From contig OZ038378.1 of NCBI GenBank assembly GCA_964036045.1, forward strand, positions 198,710,001 to 198,774,000: a DNA stretch of 64,000 bases, read 5' to 3'. The stretch is from Eutreptiella sp. 'Long Island Sound 2002' (lineage: Eukaryota > Protista > Euglenida). Shown here piece after piece: positions 6,985-54,514 of the stretch. Below the pieces are notes generated by a model. The model searched no databases. It was not told the DNA's origin and saw only the letters and a program-made list of their open reading frames with translations. Made by a program: the position numbers and the translations under genes. Position 1 is the first letter of the stretch. Each line of letters begins with the position of its first letter.

Positions 6985-7291
6985 CGACCTTGAGAAGAAC
7001 GCCGAGCTGTTCCACGTGTGTGCCCTGGGGTACCGCCTGCTGCAGCAGATGGTGTGCCGCAACCCGGTGTTCGCCATGCGGCTGCTTGAGTCGGTGCCGT
7101 TCATGATCTCGCAGTTGGCGCACTGTTGGCACGCGGCCGACACGCTGTCGGAGATGTTCCACAACAACAGCAAGCTGCTGCGCCAGATGCCCGACCGCCT
7201 GGTCACGTGCTTCGTCCGGATGTGCATCGATAAGCGCTGCCACGGGGGCTACATCAAGTTCTTGCGTGAGCTCTGCGTGTGCGAGGGGCAG
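6985..7291 (+). CDS. ITPR: IP3R exon A (RIH/ARM1): DLEKNAELFHVCALGYRLL...LCVCEGQ
   Basis: gcag|C acceptor; CAG|GTCGCG donor, phase 0; lies in ORF 6806..7435. Confidence 0.9.
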
Positions 7292-7348
7292 GTCGCGCTC
7301 TCCTCCTGTTGCACAGCCCTGTCGCATGCGCACGGTACAGCCCCAGCC

Positions 7349-7563
7349 CAGGGATGCATCAGAAGGGAAGAGACCTTACAGGCGGCCCCAGAAGCGGTTA
7401 GACCGGCGGTTGGAGGAGGTTGCCAAAGCGGTTGAGGGCGGTTACTGTCGGTTACAAATGCCATTGAAGCTGGCACCTGCCTTCAGGGAGACAGCGGCTG
7501 GGCATAGGCTGTGCGTCCTGGAGGGAAGGGGGGGTATCCCCCCCTCCTTCCAGTTCATCGATG
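7349..7563 (+). mobile_element. MITE family A (CAGGGATGCAT termini)
   Basis: Highly similar to 8931-9150; right TIR degenerate. Confidence 0.8.
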
Positions 7564-8365: not shown

Positions 8366-8571
8366 CAGGGATGAATTAGAATGGCTGACAACCATAGGAG
8401 GACCCCCCCCCCCCTGGACCCCCTTCAGACCCCCTCCCCCCTCCCCCCCCTCCTCCCCTTCCACTGTTTGAGGCAAAATTTTTTCCGGCGCCTTCGGTGT
8501 TGGGGTAGGGGGGACCATAGGAGGAGGTGGGGGTCCGCCCCCCCCCCCCCCTCTCTTTTGATACATCCCTG
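8366..8571. mobile_element. MITE with CAGGGATG / CATCCCTG termini
   Basis: Inverted termini at 8366-8373 and 8564-8571. Confidence 0.6.
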
Positions 8572-8930
8572 CCCCCCCCTCCCCAGCTGCTGTGGTGTGT
8601 CTGCTGATACAGTGTGTACCTGAGGGTTGACCAGGTTTGGCATGGAGACTAAAGATGCACTGATGCCTTACAGTGGAGTGCCTTACCTCTGATTTGCATT
8701 TTTTTTGCAGCACTGTCTGTCTGTTTTTCGACCAATTCAACTCAATCTCTTAATTAGCCCCCCCCCCCCCCGCGCGCTCCGGACCCCCCCCCCCCCGTGC
8801 CGCTGGTGTTGGGGATCAGACCCACACAGACCCCTACCCCCGCTGTACCACGTCAACCGCCAACCGCCGTACCTTCCCTTTCAACCGCTGCTGGCGGACT
8901 GTCCAGCGCTGGACACGCCCCCCCACGGCC

Positions 8931-9150
8931 CAGGGATGCATCAGAAGGGAAGGGGCCTTACAGGTGGCCCCAGCAGCGGTTATACAGGCGGTTGGAGGAG
9001 GTTGCCAAAGCGGTTGGCAGCGGTTACTGTTGGTTACAAATGCCATTGAAGCTGGCACCTGCCGTCAGGGAGACAGTGGCTGGGCATAGGCTGGGCACCC
9101 TGGAGGGGGAGGGGGGGCACCTTCCCCCCCCCCCTTCAAATGCATCCCTG
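8931..9150 (+). mobile_element. MITE family A, 220 bp, perfect 11-bp TIR
   Basis: CAGGGATGCAT ... ATGCATCCCTG; no 8-bp TSD visible. Confidence 0.85.
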
Positions 9151-18232: not shown

Positions 18233-18765
18233 AAGGCTCCCTCCGAACAGCCAACAGCAACAGCGAAAGTCGGAGGGTGTAGGCATGGGGAGAAGAGCAC
18301 GCACAGAGCTGCAGCAGCTACAGGGACCTGAGGCGGTGACCAGTACAAGCAGGAGAAGCAAGAGAAGGAGGGAGGAACGGAGGATTGGCAGCGATGGCCA
18401 TGCAACAGCCGCATGGCCGTGCAACCCGCATTAAGCTCCTACACCTCACCCTCATTGACCATGTCAGGGCCGCCATGTCGATCAGCCCCAGACATGCCAC
18501 TAGCGTCTGGCACGGAAACTGATTCTCAGTCGCAATCGGCCCCGCATCAAAGGCCACTCAGTAATACCCGCCTGGTGCACCACCAACACTCAGTAGGAAC
18601 GCACTGCGTCCAGTGTGCGGCTCAGTAGGACCCTGCTCCATCTGATCATGTCTGAGCTGGCAGACGCTAGGGCAAGTCTGATCAGCCCTTACCAGCGAGC
18701 CATGAACCCAATGGCTCGGAACAGCCATGCACATGAATGGAGTTGTCCCTTTGCCTCTACTGCAG

Positions 18766-32620: not shown

Positions 32621-33629
32621 TATCGTGAAACGACTTTCAGCATGGGGCACCGCTTGTGTGCCCCCCTTCCCCCAAGCCCCTGCCCCGCATGGGTCCCCCG
32701 CCCTGCAGAGCTGCCAACCTCATAAGAAAGAGGGCACAAGCCTGTTGGGGTCCAGGACGCCAGTGCGTCAGGGAAGACTGGCGGCTCGGAGCTGGCTACC
32801 CCCCCCCCACCCCCCACCCACCCAGCCCTCGTATCGCCTTGCCTCCCCCGCTCATATTACGGAGGGAAAGCATGCGTCAATAGTGCGCAGTGAGCTCAGA
32901 TGTATGTGCATGCGCGCGCGCGTGTGCACATTTGTGGCATGTGCACGCGCGTGTGTGTTCGTGCGAGTGAATGTGTGCCTGCGAGCGTGTCTACGCGCCT
33001 GTGCGTGCGTGTGTGTGTGTGTGTGTGTGTGCTAGCAGACGTAAGCCGCGCGCGCGTGTGCCCGCGCGTGCCAAGGCAACCCAAGAGCCATGCAAAATGT
33101 GGCACACAAATCACAACCCTTTGGCACCTCCATTCCCATCAGATGAAGTGCGCGTGCGGGCCCGGGGGGCAGCGACGTTGGGGTACGATGGGGATCACTG
33201 GTGCATCGGCTCGATGGAGGAATCGTTTGGGACAATGGCGCGGAGCAGCTGCGCCGAGCAAACTTGTGCAGCAACTTTGTGGTGCCCCAGGGGGGGGGGC
33301 AGCAATGGCGTGGAGCCACGTGTGGAGCCACCATCCGGAGCAGTAGTGTGAGGCAATGCGGTGCTGCAGTGTGGGGCCACGGTGGGGGACAGTTGTGTAG
33401 AGCAGCCGCGCTGGGGTAACCCATGGACATCATGTGTATCGATGGTCATCCATCGTTCTCAATGGGATTCCACGGGGTCATGCGAGTCCATGAGAATCAA
33501 CGTTCACACAAAGGCGCGGGCCTGTGATGGCGCTGGGTGCTGGTTCGTGAAAGGCAGGGGGTGCCATAAGGACGCTCACCCCCCCCTTTTTTTTTTTTTT
33601 TACTATGGCATCCACTCTCTGATGTTTGG

Positions 33630-33735
33630 TGGCTACCCACCAACCGCCATTGGTTACCCACCAACCGCCATCGGTTACCCACCAACCGCCATCGGTTACC
33701 CACCAACCGCCATCGGTTACCCACCGGCTGCCATC
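33630..33735. repeat. 21-bp tandem repeat x5
   Basis: cggttacccaccaaccgccat. Confidence 0.9.
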
Positions 33736-34307
33736 GTAGGGCGTATTGGACACTCCGAGTTTTTTTTTTCTCTCATTATGGCACCCCCTGGTGAAAGGTC
33801 AGCCGTGAAGTTAGGGACTCGCCCCCTGACTCCACCGGAGGATCATGGCGCCCTCGCATTCCCCGAGGTGCACACAACACATGGGTGGGTGGGGGAGGGG
33901 GGTGGGGCACTGCTGCGCGCCACACCACACAAGCCGCACGCGCCGAGACACCCCGTCCCTCAGCGGCCCCGGCCCCAGCCCCAGGCCCTGCCCCATCACC
34001 CGTGGCCCCCCCGTGCCCCCGATGCCGTGCCCGTCCCCACGAGCCACCGCAGTCTCCGCGTCCGCCCCCACGCACGGCCCCGGGGCGCGGGTGGCACGGG
34101 GCCCGCGGCCCTCGTCCGGAAAAATGCAACAGTTACTTGTGTTTCGGTCATCGCTTTTTTTTTTTCCGCCGCCCGCATTTTTCCGCAATTTCCCCACATT
34201 TTGCCGCATCCCCCCCGCAATTTTCCCGCGTTTTCCCGCATTCTTTCCTCAGCTTCTCGCAATTTTTCATTTTCCATTTCACCGCCCCCCCCCCCCCTGC
34301 TCCACAG

Positions 34308-40204: not shown

Positions 40205-41008
40205 GTACAGCAATGCGATCGCACGTGGCAGGGTCGCACCCCCACTGCCCACCTCCGTTCCCCAAGTGGCCCTTCACAGGCCCGCTCCTCCTCAATCATG
40301 GGCCTGCGATGTCCGGATTGCTGGCCTGTATTGGTCTGGGAGCAATCGGCACAGAGCCCCTTTTGCAGAAACGAAGCACTAGTCTGCCTTGAAGCAGGAC
40401 ATGGCCACACCCGCCGAAATACTCCGTTGCAGGGTAGTGTGCAGGGTTTTGCTTTGTGCGCGGCCTACCCTACTGGGGGGGTGCCTGGGTGGAGTTTTTT
40501 GGAATTCTGCGTAGTGGGGAGGTCTGGCAACCCCCCCCCCCCTTGGGGGTAGGCCGCATGCAGGGGTCCTTCAATCCCCGTGCAATGCTTGTGTCTTGTG
40601 CGTTGCACCAGGGGTTGGGTGAGTGGGTGGTCGGGTTGGTGGGTCCGTCAGGTCAAACAGCCCCCGCCCTCCCTGGGGGTAGGATACCTCTGGGTCCTGG
40701 TTGTTCGAAAATGCTGTTTGCATGGGTTTTCCAGCACCCCTCTCCAGCCCGCCCTCCCGTGGCTCAGCAAAACGCTGGTAGTGTGTGGGGCAGCCCTGCA
40801 GAGCCGGAGTGCCAACCCTCTGGCACCCGCAGTTGTTTGTTGCTGCGAAGCAGCCTGACCTTTGTGGCAGGCCTGTGCTTGAATGGGATAGAGGCGCAGG
40901 GTGCGGCGTGATTTTAGAGGTTTCAGAGGTGTTGGGTAGCAAAATGGACCACATTTTCGTGGCTTTGGCAAAGCAAGTGCAGCCCCATGGCCCTGTGGTT
41001 TCCTGCAG

Positions 41009-48694: not shown

Positions 48695-48794
48695 GTGTGC
48701 GATCTGCAGTTTTAAGCCTACTCAACGTCACTGCCCGTTAGATATTGAAACCTGACTGGATGAACTTTATTAGATGCTGAATGAAGGCCACCGC

Positions 48795-49085
48795 CACGGG
48801 GGGATGTCTCCTTGGTTCTGGTGATGGTATGGTTAGAGGGAGGGCAAGGGGAGGTAAGGGGAGCCTGTGCCCCCCCCCCCCCCCCATGCCCCCCCCCCTC
48901 ACCACCCCAAATTGCCCCACCTGGACCCCCCCTCCCAACCGACCGTCCCAACCGCCCCCCCCCCCCATCGCCCCTCCTTGAACCCCCCCCCATGCCCCCC
49001 CCCCCCCCCCCCCCTGGAGGCCTTCGGCCCACTTCTATTGGGGGGGGGGGGTCGCGTATAAAAGCGAGGAGACGTCCCCCCCGTG
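48795..49085. mobile_element. MITE family E, 291 bp
   Basis: TIRs CACGGGGGGATGTCTCC / GGAGACGTCCCCCCCGTG; perfect TSD GCCACCGC at 48787-48794 and 49086-49093. Confidence 0.9.
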
Positions 49086-51907
49086 GCCACCGCTTGTAGA
49101 ACAGTGTCAAACTTCGTAGTGGAGAGAGAAACTACATTGGAAATCTTACGGTTTCAATTTCTTGGCCGGCTCCTGGATTCAGAAACAACAGCAGTGCCCC
49201 CCCTTTCAACATTGCTGTGCCGCGGGGGGGGGGGGGGGGTTTAGTTCATAGGAGTTAGATGCAGTGGACTCGCTTTGCATATTCTGCACCTGCTTACCTA
49301 CTGCAGCGAAAGGCGCCTATGACATGTCACTGAAGAGCTTTTCTCTTTGACTTTTGCTTTGCACTTCTGCTTTGTGCCTGACGGTACCGGTCGTGCACAC
49401 GCATCCGTATCCCACAGCGGGGGGGGGGGGGGGGGGTCCGGCTTAGTCCCCGGGGGAGGGGGCACCTGTTTTCCCTACGAATGTGAGCTCAGTAGTTAGT
49501 CGGCAAACATGTCCGGTGGGTACTGCGTGGCGCTGGTCAGCGACGTGCCGCTGCATGGCCACTGTAATTACATATGTCGGTCACCTGCCCACCAGCATCT
49601 CCGCTCTCACTCTTTGTGACAGAACGGTGCCTCTGGTCTTGAAGGCCACTGATGACGAGCCAATCGTCTTCCTGCGTTTTGTGCTGTTCGCCTCCTGTGC
49701 ACACGTGCTATGGCCCAGAGCGCCTTCGGCGGCCGGGGGGGGGGGGGGGGGGGGGGCTGCGGTGCGACGCAAGTGCGCAAGTGCAGTCCGTACGGCGCCC
49801 TCCTGGGGCCCGCGGGTGGTCCGGGATGGACAGGGAGCGGGGAACAGGTCCGGAGGTTCCGTCCTTTTTTGAACCCATGCGGGGGATGGGGCTGCCCCAC
49901 TCATGAGGGGACGTGAGCATATGGGATGGAGATGATAGTGATCGATTGATTTTGGTGCGAGCGGGGCTGGGGGGGCTCTGGGGGGCCCGGGATGACGAAA
50001 TGACGATTACGAAACTCCTCCGTCCCTCTTATGGTGAAGTGTAAATTTTGGCGCTGAAGCCGCCGATTTTTTTTTTGAGGGGCCAAAAGTCGTCAAAAAT
50101 CTCGAAAAACATTTTGTTTCAAACAATGTCATGAGGCCCATCAAATTGATCAGCGGAATCCGCTGAACGCGAAGATGTATGTGGGGGGGAGCGGGGGCGA
50201 AACTCGGTTTTTTTCACGGGCCAAAAGTGGTCAAAATTATTTCGTTACCATCATTTAATCATCAGAGGGGGGGGGGGGGGCTATATCCATCCCTGATAAG
50301 GGACATGTACCAGGCATTTCAGTGCGGGAGACTGCGCTCCACATGATGGTACAGAGTGCGATTGCGGTCCATTGCCGCAAAGTGCGGGCGTTGGTGCATG
50401 GGGCCTGTTGGGGTGGCGCGGACCCGTGGTGGGCTTTTGCCCGCAAACGACCCCAGCGACAAGGCTCTGCTGTGGGGACCAATGAGACCACGACCACCAA
50501 CCACACGCGGCACGTAACATAAACGCCCCGTGTTCGACGCGGCGTCGTCGTTGCGAGGCGTCGTCTCAGCTCCAACGCAGCATGTGACGGACCATTTGCC
50601 GAGAAGAGAGGCCCGCAAGCGGGCCCCAGAAGTTTGGGCCCGCGAGCAGAGGGCCACGCGACGCGCCCTCCCCGGCACACCATAGCCCCCCCCCCCCCCT
50701 CCCGGAACGGCCGACCCCGGAGTAGTCAAACAGGACAAGTCATCCAAACAACCAAAGCACGTTCGGACCCACAGAGGGTCGGAATGTGCAAGGGCGAGAG
50801 GCCACTAGGCGGCGCCCAAGGCAAGCAAACCAGCACCATGGCCTCGTGCCAACCCCCCTCCCCCGTCTGTAGATCAATGCAGAGCCCCGGCAGTACCCCC
50901 TGACACAGTCCCTCGGGTGCATGGCACTGTGACGCCGGACAGGCCCTGTCAGCCGGGCGGCAAGGGCCTCCCCCCCCCCCCCCCCGTGTCCAGGGCCCCG
51001 GAAGGCGACCCCCACAGCACCGACCCCGGCCCTGGACCACTAAATAGGGGGCCCCGCGCAGACACACAAACGGAGCAACGCGCACCGGCCCCACGGCCCA
51101 GCGACCCCCCGACGCCCTCTGTGAAGGGAAGACCGGGGACTGTCCAGGGCCCCGGAAGGCAACCACCGAAATGCTCCCTCGCCCCCCCCCCCCCTCCCCT
51201 GCGCTGACCGCAAGGCGCACGACGACTTCTCTGGGGCCCTATTGGGCGTAAGGCACTGTGTGCTCGGCCAGGCCAGTGCCGTGGTGCGGATTCCAGGAGT
51301 ACTTCTTGTGGGGTCTGGTCATTGAGCCGTGTTTTGGGGGGGCGGGGGGGCATCCCCACCCCCCCGGGCATGCTTGCTCAGCCTTTACGGCACATCCTCC
51401 CCCCCTCCCTCCTCCCCTGCTCCATTTAAACCTCGCCTCAGGCCCAACACAGGCATTCACCCCCCGTTCTGTCTGCAGTCCGCATGAATTTAGGGACAGG
51501 GGGGGGCTAATGCAGGGCTTTCCTTCGATCTTGTTTTTTGTTAAGGGCAGCCATTCAGGACAGCCCCCAGGGACCACCAACCGGCAACCGCCAACCGCCA
51601 ACCGCCGACCGCCGCCAATTGCCAACTGCCACCAACCGCCAACCGCCAACCGCTGCCAGCCACCACCAACCACCAACTGCCAAGCGTTGAAGTAGAGAAG
51701 GTCCCATCACCATGAAGCAGAGAATTTCGTTTCTGTTGGCGTTACAGGCCTTTTCTTTTTTTTTTTTTCCTTCCCCCTTAAGGACAGGACTGGGCTAATG
51801 ACAGGCCCAGTGCTCAGAAGTGGCCCACCTCCCCCCCTCTCCCAACGCAGTCCGCCCCCCCAAAAGTGCCTCCAACGCCATCCCTCAGCCCGCGGGCCCC
51901 ATTGCAG

Positions 51908-51996
51908 GCGCTTTGGAGGAGGAGATTTGGCGCATCGCCATCCAGACCTTCGCGACGCTGATCGAATTGTGCCAGGGCCCGTGCCCTGAGAACCAG
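51908..51996 (+). CDS. ITPR: IP3R exon P: ALEEEIWRIAIQTFATLIELCQGPCPENQ
   Basis: tgcag|GC acceptor, phase 1; CAG|GTGGCC donor, phase 0. Confidence 0.92.
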
Positions 51997-52001
51997 GTGG
52001 C

Positions 52002-52483
52002 CAGGGGTGCATGAGAAGGGAAGGGACCTCAGTGGTGACCCTAGAGGCCGTTAGACAGGCGGTTGGAGGAGGTTGCCAAAGCGGTTGGGTGCGGTTATCG
52101 TCGGTTGCAAATGCCACTGAAGCTCGCACTTGCCGTCCGGGGGACAGTGGCTGGGCATAGGCTGGGGGCCCTGGAGGGGGGGGAGGGCCCATCACCATTC
52201 CCAATCTTATGAACTCAGAAAATAGGTCGAATTTACAGGTCCGGTGGGTAAAGCATAGCGTCGGCCGCTGGCGTACCGCTGCACACCCACTGCTTCGCAT
52301 CTCTGTGGCCCACCCACAGGCATCTTCGTGTCTCTTGTCTTGCGACAGAAAGGTACGTATGGTCTTATAGGCCACTGACGAGCCCATTTTCTTTCTGCGC
52401 TTTGTGCTGTTTGCTGCCAGTGCACACGTGACATAGCCCAGAGTTCCTTCGGGGGTACCTTCCCCCTTCCAATGCATCTCCTG
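52002..52483 (+). mobile_element. MITE family A forming essentially all of intron P-Q (nested ~260-bp insert at about 52186-52450)
   Basis: CAGGGGTGCAT ... ATGCATCTCCTG; TSD CAGGTGGC at 51994-52001 and 52484-52491; insert is homologous to 49560-49720. Confidence 0.88.
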
Positions 52484-52486
52484 CAG

Positions 52487-52815
52487 GTGGCTCTCGTCTC
52501 GTGCAACGTGGCGCGCGACGTCAACGACGTCCTCCGCCACGACTTCCCGAGCGGCGACCCGCTGCTGGTGTTCGAGCTCCGGGCGGCCGGGACCCTGACG
52601 CTCCTGAGCCTTCTCGAGGGCTGCAACGACGCATCCCGCCCGAAGCAGATGGTCACGGCCATCGACTTCCCGTCCGTCCAGCGGATCCTGAACTCCGTGT
52701 GGGACTTGGTCCGGGCGTCGGTTGACTCCGGGTACAAGCTGCCCAACGAAGAGCAGGCGCTGCTGGACCTCGCGTTCAACTTGTTCATCCTCCTGCACCA
52801 CCTCTCGACCTTCAG
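52487..52815 (+). CDS. ITPR: IP3R exon Q: VALVSCNV...LLSLLEGCN...AFNLFILLHHLSTF
   Basis: ctgcag|GTG acceptor; AG|GTGCCT donor, phase 2. Confidence 0.92.
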
Positions 52816-52825
52816 GTGCCTGCCC

Positions 52826-53034
52826 CAGGCCTTTGCTTAGTGGGGGCGGGGGCTGGGGGTGACCCCATGCCCTGGTGAGGGGATCTCAGTCGGAACCACC
52901 CCCACATGCCGGTCAGCTCAGTAGGAAGGAGCCCCGCCCCATGGGCAACTGAGTAGGACCCAGCGCCATCCACAAGGCTCCTCACTAGGAACCCGCCCTG
53001 ACCCCCCCCCCCCCCCCCACTAAGCAAAGGCCTG
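52826..53034. mobile_element. MITE family H, 209 bp
   Basis: Perfect 21-bp TIR CAGGCCTTTGCTTAGTGGGGG; TSD GCCTGCCC at 52818-52825 and 53035-53042. Confidence 0.92.
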
Positions 53035-53129
53035 GCCTGCCCGCCCCGGCGCCTGCCAACCTCCAGCCCCAGACCGAGGGCTTCACTTGACGCCTCAGCA
53101 CCAGCGGGGGTATGAGGTTTTGTGGAGTG

Positions 53130-53630
53130 GAGTTGAATGCATCGTGGGATGCCGCGGAGTGAGTGCACTGGAATGCAGTATGATGTGTTGCGGAGCGCTG
53201 AAATGCAGAGGTGTTGCGTGGTGGATTGGAATGTAAGATGGGGTGATGCAGAGTGGAGTAGAATGCAATGTGGGGCGTTGAGTCGACCGGAATGCAGTAT
53301 GAGGTGTTGCAGAGTGGTTTGGACTGCGATATGGCGCGGAGTGATTGGGAGGCAATATGAGGTGTTTCGGAATGAAATGGAACGTAAGATGAGGGGTACT
53401 GCGGGTTGAATTGGAATGCAATATGAGGTGTTGTGGAGTGAAACGGAAGGCATTGTGGGGTGCCGCCCAGTGACTGGAATGCTGTAGGCGGTGTTGTTGA
53501 ATGAAATGGAATGCAATATGGGGTGTTGCGGAGTGGATACGAATGCATTATGAGACGTTGCAGAGTGAGCCGATTTGCGGCATGAGGTGTTGTGTGGTGG
53601 ATTAGAATGCAATATGGGGTGTTGCGGGAG
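53130..53630. repeat. Degenerate ~33-35 bp minisatellite (gaatgcaatatgaggtgttg...)
   Basis: Recurring gaatgca.tatg.ggtgttg motif. Confidence 0.75.
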
Positions 53631-54276
53631 GGACAACCCTCCCACTCTCACCCAGAAAAAAAAACCTTTCACCGGCTGCTGGGTTTTCGCTGAGCGGGCT
53701 ACACACCTCTCACATTGTTTTTGATCCCGCCCCTGTCACCACCACCCCAATGGGTGGACTGCAAACCTCCCCATCCACAAGTGGAGGATTCCCTCTCACA
53801 AGGCACACACATACGTACACCTGCAGGCACCCACCGGCATACTGACTCAGCTTTGATGGCAACCCCCCCCCCCTCCCAAATACAAAGGACGAATGACGAG
53901 TGGGATGAAATGAAATGTGCTGAAGAAGAAATGAAGTGAAGAGAAGTGTCTCTTTTCGGGTGTTTGGCGGCACATGGGGGCGTCCTTGCGCAGCGCGCGC
54001 ACAGCGCATATGACGGCGAGAAATTGCGGGATTTTGCTACAATTGGCAATATTCTTGCCTATGCAGACCATACCACACTGCAACTCCGGCGCACGGGCCT
54101 TTGAACTCCATGGGCAGACAACTGAGCCATTTGTTGTTCACCTTCTTGTAGTGCAAAAGCATCGTAGTGAACGGAAAACCCGGCCGTGCCAATCCCAGCG
54201 GCACAAGCGTTGTGCACGGCGTGCGCACAGCGCGCAAGACGCCCCCCATATGTCTGGGCCTCGGACCCCCCACCTC

Positions 54277-54482
54277 CAGGGGTTCTTTAGAATAATTAAA
54301 AACCAAGGAGGGGGGGACCCCTCCCCCAAACCCCCCTCCCCCCCTCCCCAGACCAAAGTGACCATAGTGGGAAAAAACGAAATTTACAAGAGGGAAAATC
54401 TGGTCAGGCCATTTTTGGTACACCAAGTTTTGGGTCCAAAACCCCCTCCCCCCCTCCCCCCCCCTGCTCAAAAGAAGCCCTG
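54277..54482. mobile_element. MITE family G, 206 bp
   Basis: CAGGGGTTCTTT ... AAGAAGCCCTG; TSD CCCACCTC at 54269-54276 and 54483-54490. Confidence 0.9.
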
Positions 54483-54514
54483 CCCACCTCCCCCGCCCCC
54501 TTCCTGACCTTCAG

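Follow-up and report, generated by a model that had tools for sequence, protein, structure and literature searches.

A putative hAT-like MITE and one copy of its 8-bp duplication make up a predicted intron in a Eutreptiella IP3R/RyR-like channel paralogue

Introduction

Nonconventional introns constitute more than half of the identified introns in Euglena gracilis and 72% of those in E. agilis, and both their origin and the machinery that removes them have been open questions since the 1990s. Typically they lack GT/GC-AG borders and leave the transcript later than the conventional introns, as full-length circular RNA. A MITE origin was proposed by Milanowski et al. (2014) and has been repeated in a 2024 review and in genome-scale papers of 2024-2025, the latter still calling the origin unclear. 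Eight-nucleotide direct repeats were also found at the new gapC intron 4 of E. agilis ACOI 323, where they were read as products of break repair (Milanowski et al., 2016; PMC4770533). In Euglena, the nonconventional code has been defined genetically as 5'-N3-CDG/CH'G-N5-6 followed by an exon-initial R, with D and H' complementary, a donor spacer of strictly 3 nt and an acceptor spacer of 5 nt, 6 nt being tolerated; the same work argues that the nonconventional machinery also handles hybrid introns, which account for 0.8% in E. agilis (Nomura et al., 2025; PMC12501133). The E. gracilis nonconventional consensus reads CCAGG at +3..+7 and CCTG at -9..-6, and the conventional introns of that species carry a GTGTG donor consensus, C-rich pyrimidine tracts and CAG acceptors (PMC11170887).

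Intron gain through transposons is known from Introner elements of Micromonas, dinoflagellates and other groups, non-autonomous DNA transposons with inverted ends whose duplication supplies splice-site letters and thereby turns an exonic insertion into an intron (PMC11282704). MITEs of the hAT superfamily (Ac/Ds type) generate an 8-bp duplication and have short inverted ends beginning CAGGG, and a citation of Giroux et al. (1994) in PMC3935182 refers to Ds insertions spliced from maize transcripts.

The locus described here shares features with each of these systems. Like the euglenid nonconventional introns (Milanowski 2014, 2016; PMC11170887; PMC12501133), it has CAG at +4..+6, CTG at -8..-6, spacers of 3 and 5 nt, a purine at the exon start, paired ends, borders that can slide along a direct repeat, and a hybrid GT-AG reading; unlike the published ones, its interior is an identifiable member of a high-copy transposon family with 8-bp duplications of its own, the empty site is preserved in paralogues, and excision is something that we infer from the gene. 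As in Introner elements, a non-autonomous element with inverted ends brings a duplication that supplies splice-site letters, but this duplication is 8 bp long (e.g., 3 bp in Micromonas), the remover may not be the spliceosome, and just one of 17 sampled family copies is a whole intron, in a small sample biased to one gene family. The duplication length and the terminal CAGGG are those of hAT MITEs, whereas the duplications seen show no nTnnnnAn target preference, many copies lying in runs of G or C. Like gapC intron 4 of E. agilis, it is a recent gain bordered by direct repeats of eight nucleotides; that intron has been linked to no repeat family, whereas here membership in a family marks the repeat as a transposon scar. 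A reading made from the letters of this DNA alone (the sequence-only reading) had known of no description of such intron gain for euglenid-type genomes; the proposal of 2014 and the 8-nt repeat of 2016 precede it. In our search of the literature on hAT elements, target-site duplications, transposases or introners in Euglena, no paper named a family or tied the 3 + 5 spacers to an 8-bp duplication.

Results

An element between identical 8-bp repeats interrupts a conserved motif of the channel gene

The window is the whole 64,000-nt stretch that was analysed, and unprefixed coordinates refer to it. Its host gene encodes an IP3R/RyR-like channel, with exon matches from 6983 to 58461 that are collinear with residues 705-2389 of the 3205-residue protein P0045. 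The nearest named homologues are E. gracilis EG_transcript_60 and a Eutreptiella gymnastica protein, at ~40%; four long E. gracilis IP3R-like transcripts reach at most ~51% identity to loci of the channel family, and a close E. gracilis transcript for the channel gene was looked for and not found. The focal region comprises the following features.

51907..51996, + strand: exon P, with a provisional 5' border, in the 3' part of the channel gene (GALEEEIWRIAIQTFATLIELCQGPCPENQ), identified by translation, by tblastn to P0045, P0014 and P0038, and by a RIH_assoc Pfam match on the ORF
51994..52001, + strand: 8-bp target-site duplication CAGGTGGC, left copy, in which the final exon codon CAG is followed by the GT of the GT-AG reading and by GGC, the N3 spacer of the nonconventional reading
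51997..52486, + strand: predicted intron in the GT-AG register, 490 nt, with GT at 51997-8 and AG at 52485-6
51999..52488, + strand: the same intron in the nonconventional register, GGC-CAG...CTG-CAGGT and then exon G
52002..52187, + strand: left arm and body of the putative hAT-like MITE of family A (G-rich end CAGGGGTGCAT...), 84-89% identical to other copies
52183..52460, + strand: repeat B, unrelated and nested in the central G-run of the MITE, with relatives at 49507-49732, L007 10252-10363 and L006 4553-4640
52456..52483, + strand: right arm of the family A MITE (C-rich: TACCTTCCCCCTTCCAATGCATCTCCTG), paired with the left arm in the predicted fold and serving at the same time as a C-rich pyrimidine tract
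52484..52491, + strand: 8-bp target-site duplication CAGGTGGC, right copy, which contributes the AG acceptor (in the other reading, the N5 spacer CAGGT) as well as the letters with which the exon begins
52487..52815, + strand: exon Q (VALVSCNVARDVNDVL...ILLHHLSTF)

The element spans 482 bp, from 52002 (CAGGGGTGCATGAGAAGGGAAGGGACC) to 52483 (GGTACCTTCCCCCTTCCAATGCATCTCCTG), with inverted ends, and CAGGTGGC adjoins both ends with 8/8 identity. The positions of the 8-mers and of the element, and the placement of GT and AG, thus agree with the sequence-only reading. The probability that an 8/8 repeat stands by chance exactly at both element ends is ~1.5e-5, or ~1/256 if the letters CAGG are credited to splice-site constraint. 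The unspliced frame runs into a TGA after ...ENQVARGA; once the element and one repeat copy (490 nt) are removed, it continues as the uninterrupted coding sequence ...CQGPCPENQ/VALVSCNV... (the slash marks the junction), as had been claimed. This junction is collinear and free of indels in all homologues that cover the motif, including the E. gracilis transcript product and the Eutreptiella protein, and the predicted spliced junction across 51996/52487 reads ...GAGAACCAG/GTGGCTCTC. Because an intron existing before the insertion would be only 8 nt long, no such intron hosted the element. At the other end of exon P, homology points to a start near 51895 (PIAGAL...), and neither a GT-AG nor a nonconventional solution fits there.

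Only part of the element belongs to family A, to which the sequence-only reading had assigned it as a whole. The assignment stands for the first 186 nt (52002-52187) and the last 28 nt (52456-52483); the stretch 52183-52460 is the nested repeat B. In contigs from other samples that carry a short-form MITE, the sequence jumps from 52182 directly to the right end, which confirms the short form of ~215 bp as canonical for family A. Repeat B lies beside or within long G-runs, twice within family A copies (the focal one and one in L007), and seems to target or to carry poly-G tracts.

Family A is a high-copy family with its own 8-bp duplications

Family A was sampled in 193 kb from the ENA assembly to which the window, L001 and L003-L009 belong, a sample centred on one gene family; sampling of MITE copies via pseudo-ORFs added just three loci. 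The 193 kb hold 17 copies, in line with the abundance that the sequence-only reading had proposed, with a conserved core, a canonical length of ~215-220 bp and inverted consensus ends CAGGGATGCAT / ATGCATCCCTG. Flanks are 8/8 identical in five copies (the focal one, L004-4830, L004-4586, L006-2977 and L006-9430); in the other two-ended copies the identity is 7/8 in two, and 6/8, 5/8 and 2/8 in one each. The family A part of the focal element diverges by 10.4% from a 15-copy consensus, within the 4.3-14.8% range among copies. Two sister copies within the window lie in one large intron, whose borders they do not set.

7349..7559, + strand: family A copy with a decayed right end
8931..9150, + strand: family A copy of the canonical short form with no recognisable duplication (2/8)

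The 27-nt left end of the focal element recurs in both, with 3 mismatches in either copy, whereas shuffles gave an expectation of 0. That these two show no clean 8-bp duplication, as noted earlier, holds true, and clean duplications do flank other family A members. Over the focal element, the summed word depth was ~77,000 (all contigs at >=90% likeness) versus ~17 over the unique exons in DNA run X7, and since the depth over the element is thousands of times that over unique exons, it suggests thousands of family A copies.

Family A is small, non-coding and present in many copies, with short terminal inverted repeats that start (C/T)A(G/A)NG. From the 8-bp duplication and the CAGGG ends we provisionally assign it to the hAT superfamily; duplication length and end sequence point to a hAT-like MITE. 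The end of maize Ac, CAGGGATGAAA, is nearly the same as the family A ends.

Only the focal copy, one of the 17 sampled, is a whole intron, and the others lie within introns or between genes. In this small and biased sample, the claim that the family is generating new GT-AG introns is not borne out. A second copy was found on a splice junction: at L006 2969-3194 the left duplication GTCTGCCC starts exactly on the GT of a 3-kb GT-AG intron, so that the donor is duplicated. At L001 7104-7320, a longer similar stretch, ATCCTC(C/T)ACGTCCCCCA, stands on both sides of the copy (7080-7360); this flanking sequence may be tandemly repeated. At >=90% identity, family A and further repeats of the window are also present in estuary metatranscriptomes and in a run of another organism label (X1-X6); these repeat families are common to, or transcribed in, other samples.

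The same 490 nt can be read in a nonconventional and in a GT-AG register

The 8-bp repeat allows nine registers, all of which yield the same mRNA. Among nonconventional solutions, only the register 51999-52488 has zero offset, and it fits every element of N3-CDG/CH'G-N5-6 followed by R, a Euglena code carried over to this host by assumption. The intron also matches CCAGG at +3..+7 and CCTG at -9..-6, a consensus of E. gracilis that may not be that of the host. In both the minimum-energy and the centroid fold, 52002-52028 is predicted to pair with 52454-52483; the total fold energy of the intron was no better than that of shuffles (z = 0.11). Given its GT-AG borders, the intron falls in the 'hybrid' or 'conventional/intermediate' class and not in the pure nonconventional one.

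The spacers of 3 and 5 nt add up to the 8 bp of a single duplication copy, so that the nonconventional route would automatically excise an element of this kind without a scar; the same boundaries are readable as GT-AG as well because the target happened to be CAG/GT. We consider it probable that a hAT-like MITE entered the coding sequence of an IP3R/RyR-like paralogue and is removed from the RNA together with one duplication copy, somewhat more likely by the nonconventional route than by the spliceosome; which machinery acts we infer from the registers. A non-autonomous family A MITE would have inserted into AAC-CAG-GTG-GCT of one paralogue, duplicating the target CAGGTGGC, and repeat B would have nested in its central G-run later. 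Gene function would have survived because precisely the element and one duplication copy, 490 nt in all, would be lost from the pre-mRNA, and the base-paired transposon ends CAG...CTG, with 3 + 5 letters of the duplication, would serve as the signal for the euglenid nonconventional pathway.

The best surviving alternative is an ordinary spliceosomal GT-AG intron of Introner style, processed by U1/U2 with the donor CAG/GTGGC from the left copy and the AG from the right copy. The sequence-only reading had called the intron spliceosomal, and the GT-AG register on which this rested is indeed present, with GT and AG in the right places, although the same 490 nt also fit the nonconventional code. 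The donor GTGGC agrees with the GTGTG consensus of E. gracilis at 3 of 5 letters, which counts against this alternative, but other donors of the channel gene are equally weak (GTGTGC, GTGCCT, GTCGCG and GTCCGC), and the right arm with the duplication supplies a C-rich tract (CCTTCCCCCTTCC) and a CAG acceptor as in conventional introns of E. gracilis. Nearly all other resolvable introns of the channel gene family have GT-AG solutions as well, and for these reasons the spliceosome is a live alternative. Against it stand the agreement with every element of the nonconventional code, the long terminal pairing and the published assignment of hybrids to the nonconventional route (PMC12501133), and a single intron among 17 copies shows no Introner-like behaviour of the family. 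Taken as a whole, we regard the spliceosomal account as rather unlikely; on the removal step as such, the product being identical, nonconventional processing is somewhat more likely than spliceosomal processing.

A wider proposal can be put forward tentatively, with confidence that falls a little short of even: the 3-nt and 5-nt spacers of the Euglena code may be the two halves of an 8-bp hAT duplication, and nonconventional splicing as a class may be scarless RNA-level excision of hAT-type MITEs by a pathway that arose around the recognition of hAT ends or derives from it, the focal intron being a young member that can still be recognised. If true, this reading would explain mechanistically why the 3 + 5 spacers are fixed in experiments. 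The locus adds a case that can be checked, in which a member of a named high-copy family, whose other copies bear independent 8-bp scars, interrupts a conserved motif while the gene remains intact and its paralogues keep the site empty, and the focal intron would be a concrete example of one long-suspected origin of Euglena's unusual introns.

Paralogues preserve the empty site, and one has a different intron at the same position

L001, L003-L009 and the window come from one ENA assembly (ERZ25074135), as do all near relatives in the protein collections, and the relatives are thus paralogues rather than orthologues. At the insertion site, L003-L006 read ...CQGPCxxNQ-xALV... without interruption, and P0045 likewise has no intron there. 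The claim that the intron equals a transposon plus one target-site duplication, inserted at a site that is uninterrupted in four paralogues, is supported. The nearest relative, L001, carries a 2285-nt intron at the identical phase-0 position (AAC CAG/GTCCGC...CTCCGCAG/GCC GCC), which is GT-AG, conventional in look and devoid of family A sequence. The sequence-only reading had named an orthologous intron at this exact position lacking the MITE as evidence against its account; the L001 intron has that form, but it belongs to a paralogue, and we judge it insufficient to overturn the insertion. Along the 13 codons of TE-LCQGPCPENQ-xA, introns occur at three AG/ sites (one in L003, one in L005, and one in L001 and the window) and are absent from L004, L006 and P0045. 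With few AG/G sites available and high intron turnover among the paralogues, the position shared with L001 is weak evidence.

The L001 intron raises the alternative that the MITE inserted across the 3' border of a pre-existing intron shared with L001, with the intron's CAG and the exon's GTGGC as target, and that the old body was then deleted between CAGGT microhomologies. The identical phase-0 position speaks for this, as does the placement of the window and L001 as nearest neighbours and sisters in the best tree, although the support for that node is just 50/10. A family A copy whose duplication begins on an intron GT (L006 2977) is a partial precedent for landing on junctions, and the only sequence coincidence needed is a GT at the old donor. 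On the other hand, the intron is missing from four paralogues and from the single open frame of P0045, two precise events are required, no remnant of the older intron is found, and introns at three AG/ sites within 13 codons make a chance coincidence at CAG/G roughly 1 in 3. We hold such a takeover to be unlikely, slightly more so than spliceosomal removal. Under either gain or takeover, the present intron is nothing but the MITE and one duplication copy.

As to age, four-fold sites of the paralogues are 56% identical at a GC3 of 95-100%, i.e., saturated, and the MITE part lies 10.4% from its consensus, from which we conclude that the insertion is far younger than the paralogue split. Dating the insertion after the L001 split by the valine codon in both duplication copies was tried and dropped, as P0045 has the valine too. 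Two more intron positions that seemed common to the window and other paralogues were also dropped, one being 2 nt off and the other not placeable without RNA.

The IP3R-like gene has at least seven paralogues in the genome, and their intron positions differ widely. Upstream of exon P, an intron of ~3.2 kb (48695-51907) is missing in L001, and P0045, a single open frame of 3205 aa, is perhaps a retrocopy.

The interrupted paralogue retains the marks of a functional gene

The 15 exon matches of the window paralogue (1322 codons) are all open, the single stop lying in a match that over-runs an exon end, whereas simulated neutral decay of 5-10% produced ~6-12 new stops and zero stop-free runs in 2000. 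Identity to L001 is 90% at second and 64% at third codon positions, and GC3 is 95%. This integrity of the gene argues that the 490-nt insertion is probably spliced from the RNA. The exons were found in DNA runs, where both element borders are crossed by contigs of two organism labels; for the second label, the match across an exon/element border has 1 mismatch in 419 nt. Exon Q stayed below the listing threshold in every 'RNA?' run and in every estuary metatranscriptome, and the contigs of run X2 covered repeats only, with zero depth over unique exons.

Alternatively, the insertion might never be removed, and the window paralogue would then be a dying gene copy with a transposon in a pseudogene. 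The exon-bearing runs being DNA only would agree with this, as would the longest terminal branch among the paralogues (0.68 versus 0.17-0.35 changes per site) and the number of paralogues, which would make a loss tolerable. However, the open exon matches, the excess of conservation at second over third positions and the retained GC3 contradict it, and an element that is ~10% diverged and carries a nested insertion has had time enough for its host to decay; we consider a pseudogene quite improbable. That the 8-nt repeat is no transposon scar, but a product of double-strand-break repair, as Milanowski et al. (2016; PMC4770533) read the 8-nt repeat at a new nonconventional intron of E. agilis gapC, or of chance, 4 of its 8 letters (CAGG) being expected from splice-site constraint, is highly improbable in view of an interior that belongs to a multi-copy family, of other copies with different 8-bp duplications of their own, and of other CAG...CTG families that likewise carry 8-bp duplications.

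Other CAG...CTG elements carry perfect 8-bp duplications

Six further CAG...CTG elements of other families with perfect 8-bp duplications were found in the window, against ~0.05 in shuffles; over the whole 193 kb, twelve CAG...CTG elements besides the family A copies have perfect 8-bp repeats. Those of the window are as follows.

18489-18680, 33555-33790, 40442-40777, 51513-51792 and 54277-54482: CAG...CTG elements of other families with perfect 8-bp duplications
52826-53034: CAG...CTG element of 209 bp with perfect 12/12 ends and the duplication GCCTGCCC, 10 nt inside the intron 52816-54514

The five elements from 18489 to 54482 appear to lie in introns of the same channel gene. An automatic ORF-span test for other introns that coincide exactly with a MITE was uninformative, as the GC-rich DNA gives long spurious frames. 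The intron 52816-54514, which is the next one after exon Q, is GT-AG and has a 9-bp direct repeat, GACCTTCAG, at both junctions. An element of a different family at 8367-8575, with ends CAGGGATGAAT / ATACATCCCTG and flanks CCCCCCTC / CCCCCCCC, has termini that are almost those of family A.
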